Origin: Macrostomum hystrix
Taxonomy: Eukaryota; Animalia; Platyhelminthes
Direction of reading: 5' to 3'
NCBI GenBank assembly: GCA_950097015.1
Contig: CATNEN010000034.1
Span: forward strand, 5,146,001-5,210,000
Length of the DNA: 64,000 nt
The translations under genes and the position numbers were made by a program. Shown in pieces: positions 8,850-21,256 of the stretch (position 1 is its first letter; each line of letters opens with the position of its first letter). The notes below the pieces were generated by a model. The model was given only the letters and a program-made list of their open reading frames with translations, was not told the DNA's origin and ran no database searches.

Positions 8850-9106
8850 CTGTTAGTGTCGGCGTTTTTGTTTCATCATTTAGGCGCGCTTTATCTACTT
8901 TAAGTAGCGTGCGGGTATTCTAAAAAATGTTCGATAAATCGTAGAAGATCGCTCAAGGTTAAGTGGTTGTGTCGCAAAGTGTCCGGCTCTCGCTCTGTGG
9001 TTGCGTAACTTATCCCTGTGAGTAGGTGTGCTCAGGGGCCAGCGGAATGAGTAAAAAAACTGCGCTAAAAGCAATTGAAAATGAAATACATAGCCAGCCA
9101 ACTCAC

Positions 9107-9572
9107 TGGAATCGTTGAGTCCTGTGTAGATAAATACTCCCTGCACTGGCTGTCTGATCTTGAAGTCCACAGCCCAGGCCGGGATGGCGACTTCCGCGTT
9201 GCTAAGGACATCACACGAGTGCCTAGCAACCAGGCCGTCGACCGCCTTGCTGGATGGCGGATCCTCCTGCCAGCTGTCTCCACTGCCAAGATGTCGCTTC
9301 CGGTGCTTGCCGCCCGAAGCGTCTCCGCCACTGCTGCCATCGTTGACATAGGCATTTTTACCGTAAGCCAGGTTACCCTGGCAACGCGTGGCATTGTTGA
9401 CCCGAAAGTAGCCGGGACCGCAGGCACCACGGTGCGGGCAGCCGTAGACGCCGGCCCGCATGGCGATGCGATTGTGCCAGGAGTCCGGGTGGAAGCGAAC
9501 GTAGCGAGCCACGAACGGCTTGTTGAGATAGTGCACCCGCTCGGTGTTGCGGTCCATGTTGCCGCCGAATAT
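9107..9572 (-). CDS. Same gene, exon 6: end of F5/8C domain 2 (IFGGNMDRNTERVHYLNKPFVARYVRFHPDSWHNRIAMRAGVYGC) and start of FTP-like domain (NLAYGKNAY...SSKAVDG...C...PAWAVDF)
   Basis: Acceptor CAAAG| at 9573/9572 phase 0; donor A|GTGAGT at 9107/9106 phase 1; overlaps ORF 8895..9557. Confidence 0.9.
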
Positions 9573-13497: not shown

Positions 13498-13573
13498 AAG
13501 TACGGGAAGTTGTCATTTCACATAAAGTAGATCTTATAAAAACAAAGCTTCAAATTTTAAGAACTTTTTTTAC

Positions 13574-13746
13574 CTTGGGACTCAGGTGAGCGGCGTCCTT
13601 GTAATAGGTCCAGATGTTGCTGTCGTTACTGTAAGCCACCTTGTAGGCCGTGACCCAGGAGTCCCTAGATCCATCGCCTCTGCCCTTGGTGACCAGACCT
13701 GTGACCATTGTTGGTGGTCCAAGATCCATTTGGAGCCACTGGAGAG
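13574..13746 (-). CDS. Discoidin/F-lectin gene exon 5: LQWLQMDLGPPTMVTGLVTKGRGDGSRDSWVTAYKVAYSNDSNIWTYYKDAAHLSPK
   Basis: WLQxDLG, VT, GR and WVT.YKV.YS.D are F5/8C hallmarks. Acceptor TACCAG| 13747/13746 phase 1; donor AAG|GTAAAA 13574/13573 phase 0. Confidence 0.92.
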
Positions 13747-13774
13747 CTGGTATTGGAAGGCACGGGGTTATGTT

Positions 13775-14245
13775 CATAATTATGAAAATGGTCATAGTGA
13801 CTGATATGCTCATAATTATGAAAATGGTCATAGTGACTGATATGCTCATAATTATGAAAATGGTCATAGTGACTGATATGCTCATAATTATGAAAATGGT
13901 CATAGTGACTGATATGCTCATAGTTATGAAAATAGTCATAGTGACTGATATGCTCATAATTATGAAAATGGTCATAGTGACTGATATGCTCATAATTATG
14001 AAAATGGTCATAGTGACTGATATGCTCATAGTTATGAAAATAGTCATAGTGACTGATATGCTCATAATTATAAAAATGGTCATAGTGACTGATATGCTCA
14101 TAATTATAAAAATGGTCATAGTGACTGATATGCTCATTATTATAAAAATGGTCATAGTGACTGATATGCTCATAATTATAAAAATGGTCATAGTGACTGA
14201 TATGCTCATAATTATAAAAATGGTCATAGTGACTGATATGCTCAT
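13775..14245. repeat. 36-bp intronic tandem repeat CATAATTATGAAAATGGTCATAGTGACTGATATGCT
   Basis: Direct reading; 12-aa period in the ORF track. Confidence 0.95.
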
Positions 14246-15982: not shown

Positions 15983-16204
15983 CTGGAGTGAGTTGGTTGG
16001 TCGCACGGCGGCGTGAGGTGGTTGGGTAAGGTGTGGGGTTGATCCTTTGGTGGCGTGAGGTGGTTGGGTAGGTGTGGGGTGGGTCGCACGGCGGCGTGAG
16101 GTGATTGGGTAAGGTGTGGGGTTGGTCGGCATTCGTGCTAATGTACATTTATTTACTAGCTCGTAGAACATTCAGGAACAGATATTCGGCCTAAGGTGAC
16201 TCAC

Positions 16205-16493
16205 GTTGACAGCCGATAACTTCCATCCTCATGCTGGGATGTCCGTTGAACTTCACTGGGTAGACGCGCACAAAGCGAGCCCTCACCGGCTCGTCGAAAT
16301 AATTGTGCTTTACCGAGTACGCATCAGTGTTGCCATCGAAGACGCGCTGACGGCCGAACTGCTGAGAGTCCACGTAATCCCATTTGATGGCGTCCTGGCT
16401 GTAGCCCACTCGATAAGCCGTGACCCACTCTTTGCTGTCGCCGCGACCCTGGGTCATCACTCCGGTGACCAGGGCTTCAACTCCAAGATCCAC
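16205..16493 (-). CDS. Discoidin/F-lectin gene exon 3: VDLGVEALVTGVMTQGRGDSKEWVTAY...FDGNTD...RARFVRVYPVKFNGHPSMRMEVIGCQ
   Basis: Classic F5/8C C-terminal half. Acceptor ATCCAG| 16494/16493 phase 0; donor C|GTGAGT 16205/16204 phase 1. Confidence 0.95.
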
Positions 16494-17194: not shown

Positions 17195-17645
17195 AATTCA
17201 TCCCAAATCCCGAATCCCAACTCAGAAATACCAATTCTTAGAAATCCCAATTAATAGAAATCCCAATTCTTAGAATTCATAGAAATCAAATTTCTAAGAA
17301 ATATTTTTTCATAGAAATCCCAAATCACAGAAATCCCAACTCACAGAAATCCCAACTCACAGAAATCCCAACTCACAGAAATCCCAACTCACAGATATCC
17401 CAACTCACAGAAATCCCAATTCATATAAATCCCAATTCTTAGAATTCATAGAAATCGAATTCCTAATTCATGAAAATCTCAACACACAGAACCCCAATTT
17501 ATAAAATCCCAACTTACAGAAATTCCGATTTATCAAAATCTCGATTTATCAAAATCTCAACTCACAGAAATCCCGATTCAAATAAATCCCATAGATATCC
17601 CATTTTATAGAAAACGCAACTCAAATAAATTCCAATTCATAGTAA
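17195..17645. repeat. Degenerate 16-bp intronic repeat (CACAGAAATCCCAACT)
   Basis: Clean copies at 17325-17410, degenerate flanks. Confidence 0.8.
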
Positions 17646-18024
17646 TCCTAAGTCATTGAGAGTAAGTCATTAAGTCATTGAAAAAACTCCGGTTTTTTTA
17701 CTTGCCGGTGTAAACTAATTTGTAGACTGAAGCAATAAAACAAAACTAAGCGGTCGGAACACAGTCGTGAAATAATAAAATAGTTATACGGAAAACATGC
17801 ACGACAGTATGTGCAAAAATTAACTGAAGAGTAACTTTTTCACTAGCTAACATCAGAGAGAATTGTATTACATCGTCTACTTTACGGAACTGCAGTTTCC
17901 AAGTTTGCTCGGATCAAAAAATTTCCCTACCAGTCAGTGAGGGCTATGAGGGACCTTTTTTAGTATTACGCTAAAAAACTTCCTTATTGTGCACATCACT
18001 CTTGATTGAAATTCATTGGGATTT

Positions 18025-18572
18025 CACTCTCCTCTCTAACTCACTCTCTCCTCTCTACGTCACTCTCTCTCCTCTCTACCTCACTCTCTCCTCTCTACCT
18101 CACTCTCTCTCCTCTCTACCTCACTCTCTCTCTCCTCTCTACCTCTCTCTCTCCTCTCTAGCTCACTCTCTCTCCTCTCTACCTCTCTCTCTCCTCTCTA
18201 CCTCTCTCTCTCCTCTCTACCTCACTCTCTCCTCTCTACCTCTCTCTCTCCTCTCTAGCTCACTCTCTCTCCTCTCTACCTCTCTCTCTCCTCTCTACCT
18301 CTCTCTCTCCTCTCTACCTCACTCTCTCCTCTCTACCTCTCTCTCTCCTCTCTACCTCACTCTCTCCTCTCTACCTCTCTCTCTCCTCTCTACCTCACTC
18401 TCTCCTCTCTACCTCTCTCTCTCCTCTCTACCTCACTCTCTCCTCTCTACCTCTCTCTCTCCTCTCTACCTCTCTCTCTCCTCTCTACCTCACTCTCTCC
18501 TCTCTACCTCTCTCTCTCTCTCCTATCTATCTCACTCTCTCTCTCCTCTCTAGCTCACTCTCGCTCATCTCT
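18025..18572. repeat. CT-rich (polypyrimidine) minisatellite CTCTCTACCTCACTCTCTC; resumes at 18863-19040
   Basis: Direct reading. Confidence 0.93.
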
Positions 18573-18696
18573 CAGTTCAGCACCGGCATCTCGTACGACC
18601 GAGTCAGTGCCACGGAGTTGAGTGAGTATGGATTGAGTTGCTGGGCGCTGCCGAATCGATTACGATATGTTGAGATTGAAAGCTGGATTTGAACAA

Positions 18697-18806
18697 GCGC
18701 CTATAGCCAAATGGCTGGAGCGCTGGGCTAGACTCTACTGATGAGCTCCAATAAGAGCGAAACGCGTCTGGAGTTGCCTTGGTTCGAATCCGGATTTCAA
18801 TTTTTT
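18697..18806 (+). mobile_element. tRNA-derived / SINE-like Pol III unit surrounding the hammerhead (A box, B box, T6)
   Basis: GCGCCTA-TAGCCAAATGG (A box 18704-14 at tRNA positions 8-18); GGTTCGAATCC 18781-91 (perfect B box); TTTTTT 18801-06. Confidence 0.6.
18731..18775 (+). ncRNA. Minimal type I hammerhead ribozyme (predicted GUC cleavage after 18768), antisense to the host intron
   Basis: Stem I GACTCTA(18731-37)/TGGAGTT(18769-75); core CTGATGA 18738-44; stem II GCTC-CAATAA-GAGC 18745-58; GAAA 18759-62; palindromic ACGCGT stem III; GTC triplet 18766-68. Confidence 0.88.
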
Positions 18807-18862
18807 CGATACATATCGCAATCGATTCCAACATTAGATTTTTTTAATTCAATGGGCAGTGT

Positions 18863-19040
18863 CCTCTCTCCTCTCTCCCGCTCTCTCTCCCTCTCTCCCT
18901 CTCTCTACCTCACTCTCTCTCTACCTCACTCTCTCTCCTGTCTACCTCTCACTCTGCTCTCTACCTCACTCTCTCTTTCCTCTCTACCTCACTCACTCTC
19001 TCCTCTCGTCTCTCCCCTCTACCCCTCTCTCCTCTCTACA
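18863..19040. repeat. Continuation of the CT-rich minisatellite
   Basis: Same CTCTCTACCTCACTCT units as 18025-18572. Confidence 0.88.
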
Positions 19041-19689: not shown

Positions 19690-21190
19690 CGAGTTGTCTG
19701 TAGAGACTTGTCATCTATGAGTTGTCACATAGATTCTACAGTGAGTTGTTTGTAGTGACTTGTCATCTATGAGTTGTCGCATAGATTCTTCAGTGAGTTG
19801 TCTGTAGTTGTCATCTATGATTTGTCACATAGATTCTACAGTGAGTTGTCTGTAGTGACTTGTCATTGAGTTGTCTGTAATCTATATATTCTACAGTGAG
19901 TTGTCTGTAATCGATAGATTCTACAGTGAGTTGTCAGTAATCTATAGATTCTACAGTGAGTTGTCTGTAATCTATAGATTCTACAGTGAGTTGTCAGTAA
20001 TCTATAGATTCTACAGTGAGTTGTCAGTAATCTATAGATTCTACAGTGAGTTGTCTGTAATCTATAGATTCTACAGTGAGTTGTCAGTAATCTATAGATT
20101 CTACAGTGAGTTGTCTGTAATCTATAGATTCTACAGTGAGTTGTCAGTAATCTATAGATTCTACAGTGAGTTGTCTGTAATCTATAGATTCTACAGTGAG
20201 TTGTCAGTAATCTATAGATTCTACAGTGAGTTGTCTGTAATCTATATATTCTACAGTGAGTTGTCTGTAATCGATAGATTCTACAGTGAGTTGTCAGTAA
20301 TCTATAGATTCTACAGTGAGTTGTCAGAAATCTATAGATTCTACAGTGAGTTGTCAGTAATCTATAGATTCTACAGTGAGTTGTCAGAAATCTAGAGATT
20401 CTACAGTGAGTTGTCAGTAATCTATAGATTCTACAGTGAGTTGTCTGTAATCTATAGATTCTACAGTGAGTTGTCAGTAATCTATAGATTCTACAGTGAG
20501 TTGTCAGAAATCTAGAGATTCTACAGTGAGTTGTCAGTAATCTATAGATTCTACAGTGAGTTGTCAGTAATCTATAGATTCTACAGTGAGTTGTCAGTAA
20601 TCTATAGATTCTACAGTGAGTTGTCAGTAATCTATAGATTCTACAGTAAGTTGTCAGTAATCTATAGATTCTACAGTGAGTTGTCAGTAATCTATAGATT
20701 ATACAGTGAGTTGTCAGTAATCTATAGATTCTACAGTGAGTTGTCAGTAATCTATAGATTCTACAGTGAGTTGTCAGTAAACTATAGATTCTACAGTGAG
20801 TTGTCAGTAAACTATAGATTCTACAGTGAGTTGTCAGTAATCTATAGATTCTACAGTGAGTTGTCAGTAATCTATAGATTCTACAGTGAGTTGTCAGAAA
20901 TCTAGAGATTCTACAGTGAGTTGTCAGTAATCTATAGATTCTACAGTAAGTTGTCAGTAATCTATAGATTCTACAGTGAGTTGTCAGTAATCTATAGATT
21001 ATACAGTGAGTTGTCAGTAATCTATAGATTCTACAGTGAGTTGTCAGTAATCTATAGATTCTACAGTGAGTTGTCTGTAACCTATAGATTCTACAGTGAG
21101 TTGTCAGTAACCTATAGATTCTACAGTGAGTTGTCTGTAGTGACTTGTCATCTATGAGTTGTGACATAGATTCGACAGTGAGTTGTCTGT
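19690..21190. repeat. 30-bp intronic tandem repeat AGTGAGTTGTCAGTAATCTATAGATTCTAC
   Basis: Exact 30-bp phase across the 60-nt lines 19921-21121. Confidence 0.97.
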
Positions 21191-21256
21191 AGTCTATTTT
21201 CTACGGCAAGTTGGTGTTTTATGCAATTATATTCAAATCGTAATCAAATATCTTAC

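Follow-up and report, generated by a model that had tools for sequence, protein, structure and literature searches.

The stretch of Macrostomum hystrix DNA analysed here (64,000 nt; the window) carries at positions 18568–18905, with a probability that we put at about 80%, one insertion of a young, non-coding and non-autonomous retroelement with one type I hammerhead ribozyme per unit. The element belongs to a new family of an already known kind of ribozyme-carrying retroelement. The ribozyme is not specific to its locus; the window copy is one member of a young dispersed repeat, about 2% from the consensus. Noteworthy traits of the family are its oriented targeting of CT repeats and the tRNA-like boxes that surround the ribozyme.

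The hammerhead motif

A complete type I hammerhead can be read directly from the letters at 18732–18774 of the + strand. Helix I is formed by ACUCUA (18732–18737) and UGGAGU (18769–18774), 6 bp including one G·U, and between its two strands follow the conserved core CUGAUGA (18738–18744), the helix II hairpin (18745–18758) with the 4-bp stem GCUC/GAGC (18745–18748 and 18755–18758) and the loop CAAUAA, the core GAAA (18759–18762), the palindromic helix III sequence ACGCGU (18762–18767) and the cleavage triplet GUC (18766–18768; C17 is C18768), the cut being predicted between C18768 and U18769. Helix III was placed by direct reading; both strands of helix I, both core segments and helix II were placed by reading and by alignment with the Rfam model Hammerhead_HH9, CUGAUGA in addition by a pattern count and helix II by the fold. 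A 26-nt core pattern has this one match in the 64-kb window, with 0.00 expected.

The features by which Rfam clan CL00010 defines type I, namely a CUGANGA core, GAAA and an NUH triplet in type I order, are all present, as are three helices with helix I open. Thus the preliminary description is borne out both in reporting an intact type I hammerhead whose palindromic helix III is very short and in placing the predicted cut after C18768, all elements being in order; the limits given there, 18731–18775, are one base too wide on each side. What did not hold is the term minimal, since helix I runs on via a 4 × 3-nt internal loop into a 5-bp outer helix of CUGGG (18723–18727; HH9 alignment and MFE folds) and CUUGG (18778–18782; HH9 alignment and MFE fold), as in the layout of the HH9 model. 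Animal type I hammerheads have a 6-bp helix I, a 4-bp helix II and a helix III of 1–2 bp with a small palindromic loop (PMC4209133). Judged by its sequence, the window ribozyme is of this canonical animal design and not the stripped minimal version of Penelope-like elements.

The HH9 model could be aligned end to end with 18720–18791, with a score of 37 bits; E is 7.9e-8 for the scan of 501 nt and 8.4e-6 at the scale of the whole genome. No Rfam family reached its gathering score, neither in the gathering scan of the window nor in genome searches with HH9 (gathering score 52 bits) and Hammerhead_1 (34 bits). All matches of the two genome searches belong to the 336-nt family described below and all lie below the cut-offs: the best sister copy scored 42.1 bits with HH9, and the maximum with Hammerhead_1 was 31.4 bits, reached only by sister copies. 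Rfam annotation at gathering thresholds would therefore overlook every copy of the family.

The HH9 hammerhead (RF02275) is intronic in amniotes. Core, helix II and loop of the window ribozyme are almost identical to it (in the A-loop subfamily of our family they are identical there), and the two share the layout of helix I, internal loop and outer helix. Unlike HH9, the unit has a helix III that is 5 nt shorter, its score of 37 bits lies under the cut-off of 52 bits, and it is a multi-copy mobile repeat, not a single conserved intronic locus.

Copy number, divergence and the neighbouring discoidin gene

In a BLAST search of the species' own 220-Mb assembly a 201-nt query gave 127 candidates, of which the top 40 were scored and showed 95–100% identity. 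The 43-nt ribozyme motif occurs in the genome in 85 copies with at most three mismatches (reversed control, 0), and 39 of these are identical to the window copy. The genome check for related copies that the preliminary description had named was thus positive. Covarying stems among such copies, also named there, were found only between different hammerhead families of the genome (see below); within the 336-nt family neither covariation nor selective constraint was seen among the copies, the family being too young for either to show.

The mean distance from the consensus is 1.9% in 28 full-length copies. In the ribozyme segment it is 2.5% with the loop polymorphism included, hence the ribozyme shows no extra conservation over the rest of the unit. 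The main polymorphism of the family is the helix II loop base T18752, which can be T, A or C. By our own count from the list of variants, core changes that are expected to inactivate (such as G5, C3 or a GUG triplet) are present in about 6 of the 85 copies. The window ribozyme is intact because the insertion is young rather than because the locus is under selection.

These numbers bear on the question whether the ribozyme could have been exapted to act on the locus that hosts it, as a counterpart of the HH9 hammerhead that is conserved in an intron of amniotes. HH9 is the best Rfam match, and a discoidin exon lies only 2.2 kb from the element; yet the element is on the strand opposite the gene, at least 85 near-identical copies with a neutral-looking decay exist, some six of them with core changes that are expected to inactivate, and the ribozyme lacks any excess of conservation. 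We consider exaptation extremely unlikely.

Nor is it established that the element lies in an intron, as assumed when it was described as antisense within one. The exons of the discoidin (F5/8 type C) gene at 8898–9557, 13553–14245 and 16194–16493 of the − strand are all on one side of the element, and no discoidin exon was found beyond it in the window. An ORF of 434 codons on the far side (19866–21167) was rejected as an exon, being a translated 30-bp minisatellite, and the intron status is therefore unproven, a further point against exaptation. The ribozyme is most probably the cargo of a mobile repeat and not a regulator of the discoidin gene; for the window locus it matters little.

Anatomy of the unit and structure of the copies

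In the window the body of the unit, core positions 1–294, extends from 18568 to 18861 of the + strand (BLAST against the own genome and alignment of 30 loci). The body of the consensus starts at 18574, ends with GGGCAGTG at 18854–18861 and has 288 nt; together with a CT-rich tail of about 48 nt in the consensus (18862–18905 in the window, from the flanks of 30 loci) this gives a unit of about 336 nt with a GC content of 47–49%. The unit contains no coding ORF, only spurious ones across the CT repeats.

The tail forms the fixed 3′ end of the copies and, where an insertion exceeds one unit, also joins one unit to the next. Full copies have this 48-nt CT tail in front of the body as well, often with the 3′ part of another unit before it; such upstream partial units begin, among others, at core positions 152, 155, 186, 202, 231, 234, 253, 261, 271 and 279, and all mapped 5′ ends are scattered between core positions 22 and 279. 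Probes along the unit were found 48 times (5′ part, core 26–64), 85 times (hammerhead) and 116 times (3′ end), the last number setting the size of the family at 116 copies or more. The counts therefore indicate a fixed 3′ end with graded 5′ truncation, which is the signature of target-primed reverse transcription. A pile-up of the 5′ ends of truncated copies at the nucleotide after GUC would be a trace of cleavage in vivo; exactly there begin only 2–3 copies (L006, L052 and L057), and the 5′ ends cluster more broadly within the ribozyme (core 171–202).

Insertions are thus “1.x-mers” of the 336-nt unit, most copies being monomers. True tandem loci are few, about eight, with two ribozymes 300–336 nt apart (e.g., C25, C33, C39 and C1). 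Insertions that exceed one unit point to an RNA template that was circular or multimeric and ran across a ribozyme site left uncut or re-ligated. In these marks of target-primed reverse transcription from such an RNA the family resembles non-LTR retrozymes and the Sm-alpha elements of schistosomes. To judge from the arrangement of the copies, RNA of unit length could be released only from loci with two ribozymes, including insertions of about 1.5 units or longer. A higher-order array (C38), considered as a possible longer element, was rejected; it is a segmental duplication of a truncated copy.

At the window locus there is no tandem arrangement but a single copy with one ribozyme. Dimerisation in cis and the release of unit-length RNA are therefore impossible for it, and the locus is probably inert; the copy, of about 1.0 unit, is most likely an inert “solo” offspring. 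Four public read sets (assembled contigs, none on record as RNA) carry the consensus of the family, and in these four sets of contigs no joints, ends or circles were found. A 157-nt contig (X1) that covers 18650–18806 was considered as a transcript; its end was not accepted as a transcript end because it stops at a variable T run.

Insertion sites

Almost every copy lies inside a CT-rich micro- or minisatellite, with the CT strand being the strand of the element. Among 52 copies the upstream flank has a C+T content of at least 0.75 on the element's strand in 40 and the downstream flank in 33, and GA-rich flanks were found in none. The repeat unit of the host varies from locus to locus, yet in the flanks of 30 loci it matches on both sides of one copy. 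In the window the element is preceded by a CT-rich minisatellite with a 19-nt unit in 26.5 copies (18027–18545, + strand; Tandem Repeats Finder), the upstream half of the target, and the same 19-nt unit is resumed at 18866–19037 (+ strand; repeat search and Tandem Repeats Finder), the downstream half.

At locus L006 the insertion is flanked on either side by the same stretch of about 100 bp of host sequence (91% identity in an alignment of 104 nt), which we read as a probable target-site duplication starting at a short CT run. The duplicated host sequence is more divergent than the copies of the element themselves. The 5′ end of the insert at this locus is the first nucleotide after GUC, with one extra T before it.

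Helix III, dimers and predicted folds

In the monomeric ribozyme only the A15.1–U16.1 pair is possible in helix III, and the energy rises from −10.8 to −5.1 kcal/mol. A double hammerhead has a helix III of 6 bp, and its designed structure is computed at −29.7 kcal/mol, compared with −21.6 kcal/mol for two monomer folds, a gain of about 8 kcal/mol. Cleavage that depends on dimers has been documented for the hammerheads of newt and axolotl and for those of the Penelope type (PMC7761336, PMC4209133, PMC7229834). The papers and the fold energies agree with the preliminary description, which had placed the ribozyme with those of Penelope-like elements, non-LTR retrozymes and Sm-alpha and had noted that such ribozymes can act as dimers; the window ribozyme, too, would be expected to need a dimer.

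Taken in isolation, the 72-nt ribozyme region has a minimum free energy that is no better than that of shuffled sequences (z = 0.12), and alternative, non-ribozyme folds outscore the hammerhead fold in the nearest-neighbour model. Folding energy therefore neither proves nor disproves activity.

The central 201 nt are predicted to adopt, at −79.7 kcal/mol (z = −6.4), a structure made up of a long stem and a three-way junction, with helices I and II of the hammerhead in one of the arms. The stem pairs the two arms of a long imperfect inverted repeat (repeat search and 201-nt fold; + strand) and closes a rod-like structure; the left arm is at 18653–18694, and the right arm, at 18782–18828, overlaps the B-box-like motif and the T6 run described in the next section. 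For the circular 336-nt unit, cut from a tandem locus, a fold of −115.7 kcal/mol is predicted (z = −4.8) with 68% of the bases paired, in which the purine-rich 5′ portion of the body is the pairing partner of the CU-rich tail. The circles of retrozymes have been described as similarly self-paired (PMC7761336, PMC7229834).

tRNA-like boxes around the ribozyme

The hammerhead is bracketed by two motifs of the + strand that resemble the internal promoter of a tRNA gene. At 18704–18714 a reading of the sequence and of the consensus revealed an A-box or D-arm-like motif, TAGCCAAATGG (TAGCCTAATGG in the family consensus), and at 18781–18791 a pattern search found a B-box or T-loop-like motif, GGTTCGAATCC, the sole match to GGTTCGANNCC in the 64-kb window, with 0.24 expected. 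From start to start the two are 77 nt apart, an order and spacing that are workable at the level of motifs only. Ten nt after the B box follows a T6 run (18801–18806, + strand; by reading), which is also present in the family consensus and would act as a terminator for RNA polymerase III.

The genome also contains a diverged SINE-like family of tRNA origin (L095–L100). Compared by eye, the D-arm-like stretch agrees with it at about 17 of 19 positions and the B box at 11 of 11; BLAST against this family reported the B-box region only (E = 0.008) and not the match of the D arm. Ancestry of the ribozyme flanks from a tRNA or SINE is likely in view of these sequence matches.

Two readings give the boxes a present function. 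In the first, 18697–18806 is a stand-alone tRNA-like gene for polymerase III of about 105 nt in which the hammerhead has replaced the anticodon arm, and which either yields a small self-cleaving RNA that has its own function or serves as the internal promoter of the element. The A-box-like motif, the perfect B box and the T6 run 10 nt later are indeed laid out like those of a tRNA gene, both the D-arm-like and the T-loop-like stretch are similar to the tRNA-derived family just mentioned, and Sm-alpha elements are also derived from a tRNA (PMC2770079). With or without introns allowed, however, ARAGORN found no tRNA cloverleaf except at thresholds of 80% or less, where the models are mutually inconsistent, and an acceptor stem is missing. 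The predicted fold has the B-box region base-paired within the long stem of the rod. Furthermore, conservation among the copies continues beyond this putative gene, for 130 nt on its upstream and 100 nt on its downstream side, and no copy ends at its limits. We regard the stand-alone gene as decidedly unlikely.

In the second reading the family is a hybrid: a polymerase III unit of the tRNA type has received a canonical hammerhead in place of its anticodon arm, and the boxes and the T6 run are functional. If this were true, each copy, the one in the window included, would make a self-cleaving small RNA of about 105 nt that dimerises in trans via the palindromic helix III; the family would be a retrozyme with its own promoter, whose CT tail directs oriented integration into CT microsatellites and might even seed such minisatellites. 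This, too, appears unlikely to us. Against a working tRNA-like gene it speaks further that the unit runs 130 nt upstream of the A box, and T6 and T5–7 runs downstream of the B box would halt polymerase III before the copied template was complete; the boxes therefore cannot have made the RNA that was reverse transcribed.

Penelope-like elements and the possible source of the reverse transcriptase

A search of the genome with the Pfam GIY-YIG domain led to copies, 94–96% identical, of an element that has a reverse transcriptase motif (YVDD) and a GIY-YIG domain and carries a hammerhead close to its 3′ end. With its reverse transcriptase/endonuclease ORF as query at least 134 Penelope-like matches were obtained, which form several families at 40–60% identity. 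In 21 of the 30 loci inspected a hammerhead was found 158–525 nt past the ORF match, in most of them at 158–225 nt.

The hammerheads of these families are of the bulged Penelope type. Their helix II varies yet stays complementary (GGCU/AGCC, GUCC/GGAC, GACC/GGUC, GCAC/GUGC), and their helix III varies yet stays palindromic (ACGCGU, AAGCUU, AUGCAU). A further family of hammerheads, in a (CTAT)n array, has GGCCC/GGGCC and AUAU in these places. At the level of sequence the covariation between families shows that the hammerhead fold is maintained in the retroelements of this genome.

Retrozymes have been derived from Penelope-like elements, and “solo” monomers have been described (bioRxiv 10.64898/2026.07.22.740005); hammerheads have been linked with Penelope-like elements, and retrozymes occur alongside these (PMC7761336, PMC4209133, bioRxiv 10.64898/2026.07.22.740005). 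Partial tandems with a 5′-truncated upstream unit are a hallmark of Penelope-like insertions (PMC8557442). The 336-nt family has such partial tandems with a 5′-truncated upstream copy and a bias for microsatellites, as described for non-autonomous Penelope-like elements (compare PMC8557442). It is not an autonomous one, since the unit contains no ORF for a reverse transcriptase or GIY-YIG endonuclease.

In a BLAST comparison of the 336-nt unit with one Penelope-like family at a word size of 7 only the 11-mer CGAAACGCGTC of the ribozyme was common to both. The unit lacks the conserved 3′ terminus of the sampled Penelope-like families (read by eye in 30 loci out of at least 134) as well as their bulged ribozyme type, and among these sampled families no partner with the sequence of the unit or with its CT target was seen. 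As sequence, ribozyme type and 3′ terminus are not shared, the link to Penelope-like elements is one by analogy, based on the structure of the insertions and on the literature. By this analogy a Penelope-like element would be the most likely source of the reverse transcriptase, and a LINE is a possible partner.

In the alternative with a LINE, the family would be a hammerhead-bearing, SINE-like repeat mobilised by a LINE that itself has a CT-rich simple repeat as its 3′ tail. A tRNA-like part followed by a simple-repeat tail is the classical layout of SINEs, 5′ truncation and microhomology at CT-rich targets would also fit target-primed reverse transcription of the LINE type, and the missing 3′ terminus and ribozyme type of the Penelope-like families point in the same direction. 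Against a LINE speak the partial tandems with their 5′-truncated upstream unit, the ties of hammerheads and retrozymes to Penelope-like elements, and the abundance of these elements in this genome. We therefore think a LINE partner rather unlikely and prefer a Penelope-like one.

Proposed mechanism of mobilisation

We propose that the family moves as follows. A locus with two ribozymes, made up of tandem units or of an insertion of about 1.5 units or more, would be transcribed. The two hammerheads would pair through their palindromic helix III and cut after GUC, and a host RNA ligase would join the 336-nt product into a circle, which would fold to a rod. The reverse transcriptase of a retrotransposon, most likely a Penelope-like one, would then copy the circle where a CT/GA-rich micro- or minisatellite is nicked, the purine-rich strand of the DNA serving as primer by annealing to the unit RNA at its CU-rich tail. 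Copying round the template for a variable distance would leave insertions with a constant 3′ end and differing 5′ ends, some of them longer than one unit.

The family could serve as a clean young example of how ribozyme-bearing retroelements move. Its roughly 116 copies at about 2% from the consensus, with a recognisable, oriented target and a fixed 3′ end, make it useful for such a study, and many Penelope-like candidate partners share the same 220-Mb genome.

Relation to known ribozyme-carrying elements

The Sm-alpha element of schistosomes has a unit of about 330 bp, and in its ribozyme helix II has 4 bp, the A-rich loop has 6 nt and helix III is weak, as in the 336-nt unit; helix I of the Sm-alpha ribozyme is extended past an internal loop into a further helix. 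Sm-alpha is a tRNA-derived SINE-like element with a hammerhead, whose tRNA-like part is called by tRNAscan-SE as tRNA-Gln (PMC2770079), which implies that this part is contiguous. Compared by description, Sm-alpha and Sj-alpha resemble our family in combining tRNA-derived sequence and a type I hammerhead in one SINE-like unit. They differ in that in the 336-nt unit the ribozyme splits the A-box and B-box halves and a cloverleaf is undetectable.

Non-LTR retrozymes have units of 170–400 nt with a GC content below 50% and one type I hammerhead (Cervera and de la Peña, 2020; PMC7229834). The non-coding 336-nt unit falls within these limits with its length, its 47–49% GC and its canonical type I hammerhead, and agrees further in the 6-bp helix I, the 4-bp helix II, the weak palindromic helix III, the rod-like circle (here predicted from DNA sequence only) and the occurrence of monomers, dimers and “solo” copies in the genome. 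In contrast to these retrozymes, it is mostly dispersed as 1.0 to 1.x units and does not form long tandem arrays, it inserts strictly in one orientation into CT-rich micro- and minisatellites through its CT-rich tail, and its ribozyme is bracketed by A and B boxes, retrozymes having been described as promoterless (PMC7761336).

With the pseudo-LTR hammerheads of Penelope-like elements (Cervera and de la Peña, 2014; Craig et al., 2021) the family shares the partial tandems with a 5′-truncated upstream copy, the bias for microsatellites and a palindromic helix III, the sequence ACGCGU recurring in several Penelope-like families of this genome. Unlike Penelope-like elements, the unit is devoid of a reverse transcriptase/GIY-YIG ORF and of their conserved 3′ terminus, and unlike theirs, its hammerhead has no bulged base after CUGANGA and possesses the full architecture of helix I and loop. 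Elsewhere in the genome tandem hammerheads occur 251 nt apart; these belong to a different family, of the Penelope type.

5′ Ends of the Element Copies

Across the family of the 336-nt element, truncated copies and upstream partial units have 5′ ends that cluster at core 171–202 (numbered along the element body), which corresponds to 18738–18769 of the window and lies inside the ribozyme. Of the 32 ends that map to core 165–280, about 21 fall within this stretch; the exact cleavage site is the 5′ end in only 2–3 of the 32. Stalling of RT at the structured apex could explain this cluster, and so could partly cleaved templates. At one locus (L052:320–390; G000:C2:7.353 Mb) the copy begins at the nucleotide after GUC and is separated from its host minisatellite by 66 nt of unrelated sequence, which terminates in a duplicate of core 200–207 (TCTGGAGT). 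This arrangement may reflect a template switch at a cleaved 5′ end.

Host Minisatellites and Tandem Duplication

Most Penelope-like families sampled at the 30 loci matching the RT/endonuclease ORF (L065–L094) share a conserved terminus that sits 70–90 nt past their hammerheads and reads ...GCGAGCTAC..TACC[AT]G (e.g., L070, L074 and L080). Several of the CT-rich minisatellites hosting the 336-nt element carry part of this terminus, CTCTACC, in their repeat units, among them the window's own with its 19-mer unit (18027–18545). Extremely truncated tails of retroelements, stacked one after another, might make up such CT-rich host minisatellites.

At another locus (L033; G000:C38:21522500–21530000) five identical 5′-truncated copies, each comprising core 118–303, follow one another at spacings alternating between about 1589 and about 690 nt; this array is a segmental tandem duplication of one insertion plus its CT-rich flanks.

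In the window, the element region is flanked by two further large minisatellites, at 17213–17656 (16-nt units) and at 19691–21213 (30/52-nt units). Within the latter, the 30-nt array is open throughout as a 434-codon ORF, which could be mistaken for a gene and is a read-through of the array.

Other Repeat Families of the Genome

A diverged tRNA-derived SINE-like family (L095–L100; 70–87% identical) has a D-arm and a T-loop similar to the boxes on either side of the 336-nt element's hammerhead; ARAGORN called no tRNA in any of these copies.

A distinct Penelope-type hammerhead family was observed at L031:1518–1830 (G000:C34:3.335 Mb), with CUGACGA, a bulged A, a 5-bp helix II (GGCCC/GGGCC) and an AUAU palindrome; the (CTAT)n array at this locus contains two hammerhead copies, 251 nt apart. 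One Penelope-like family has two copies (L069 and L070) at G000:C8:2.49 Mb; they lie about 3.4 kb apart in opposite orientation, bordered by (TAG)n/(CTA)n, an inverted-pair arrangement typical of Penelope-like insertions.
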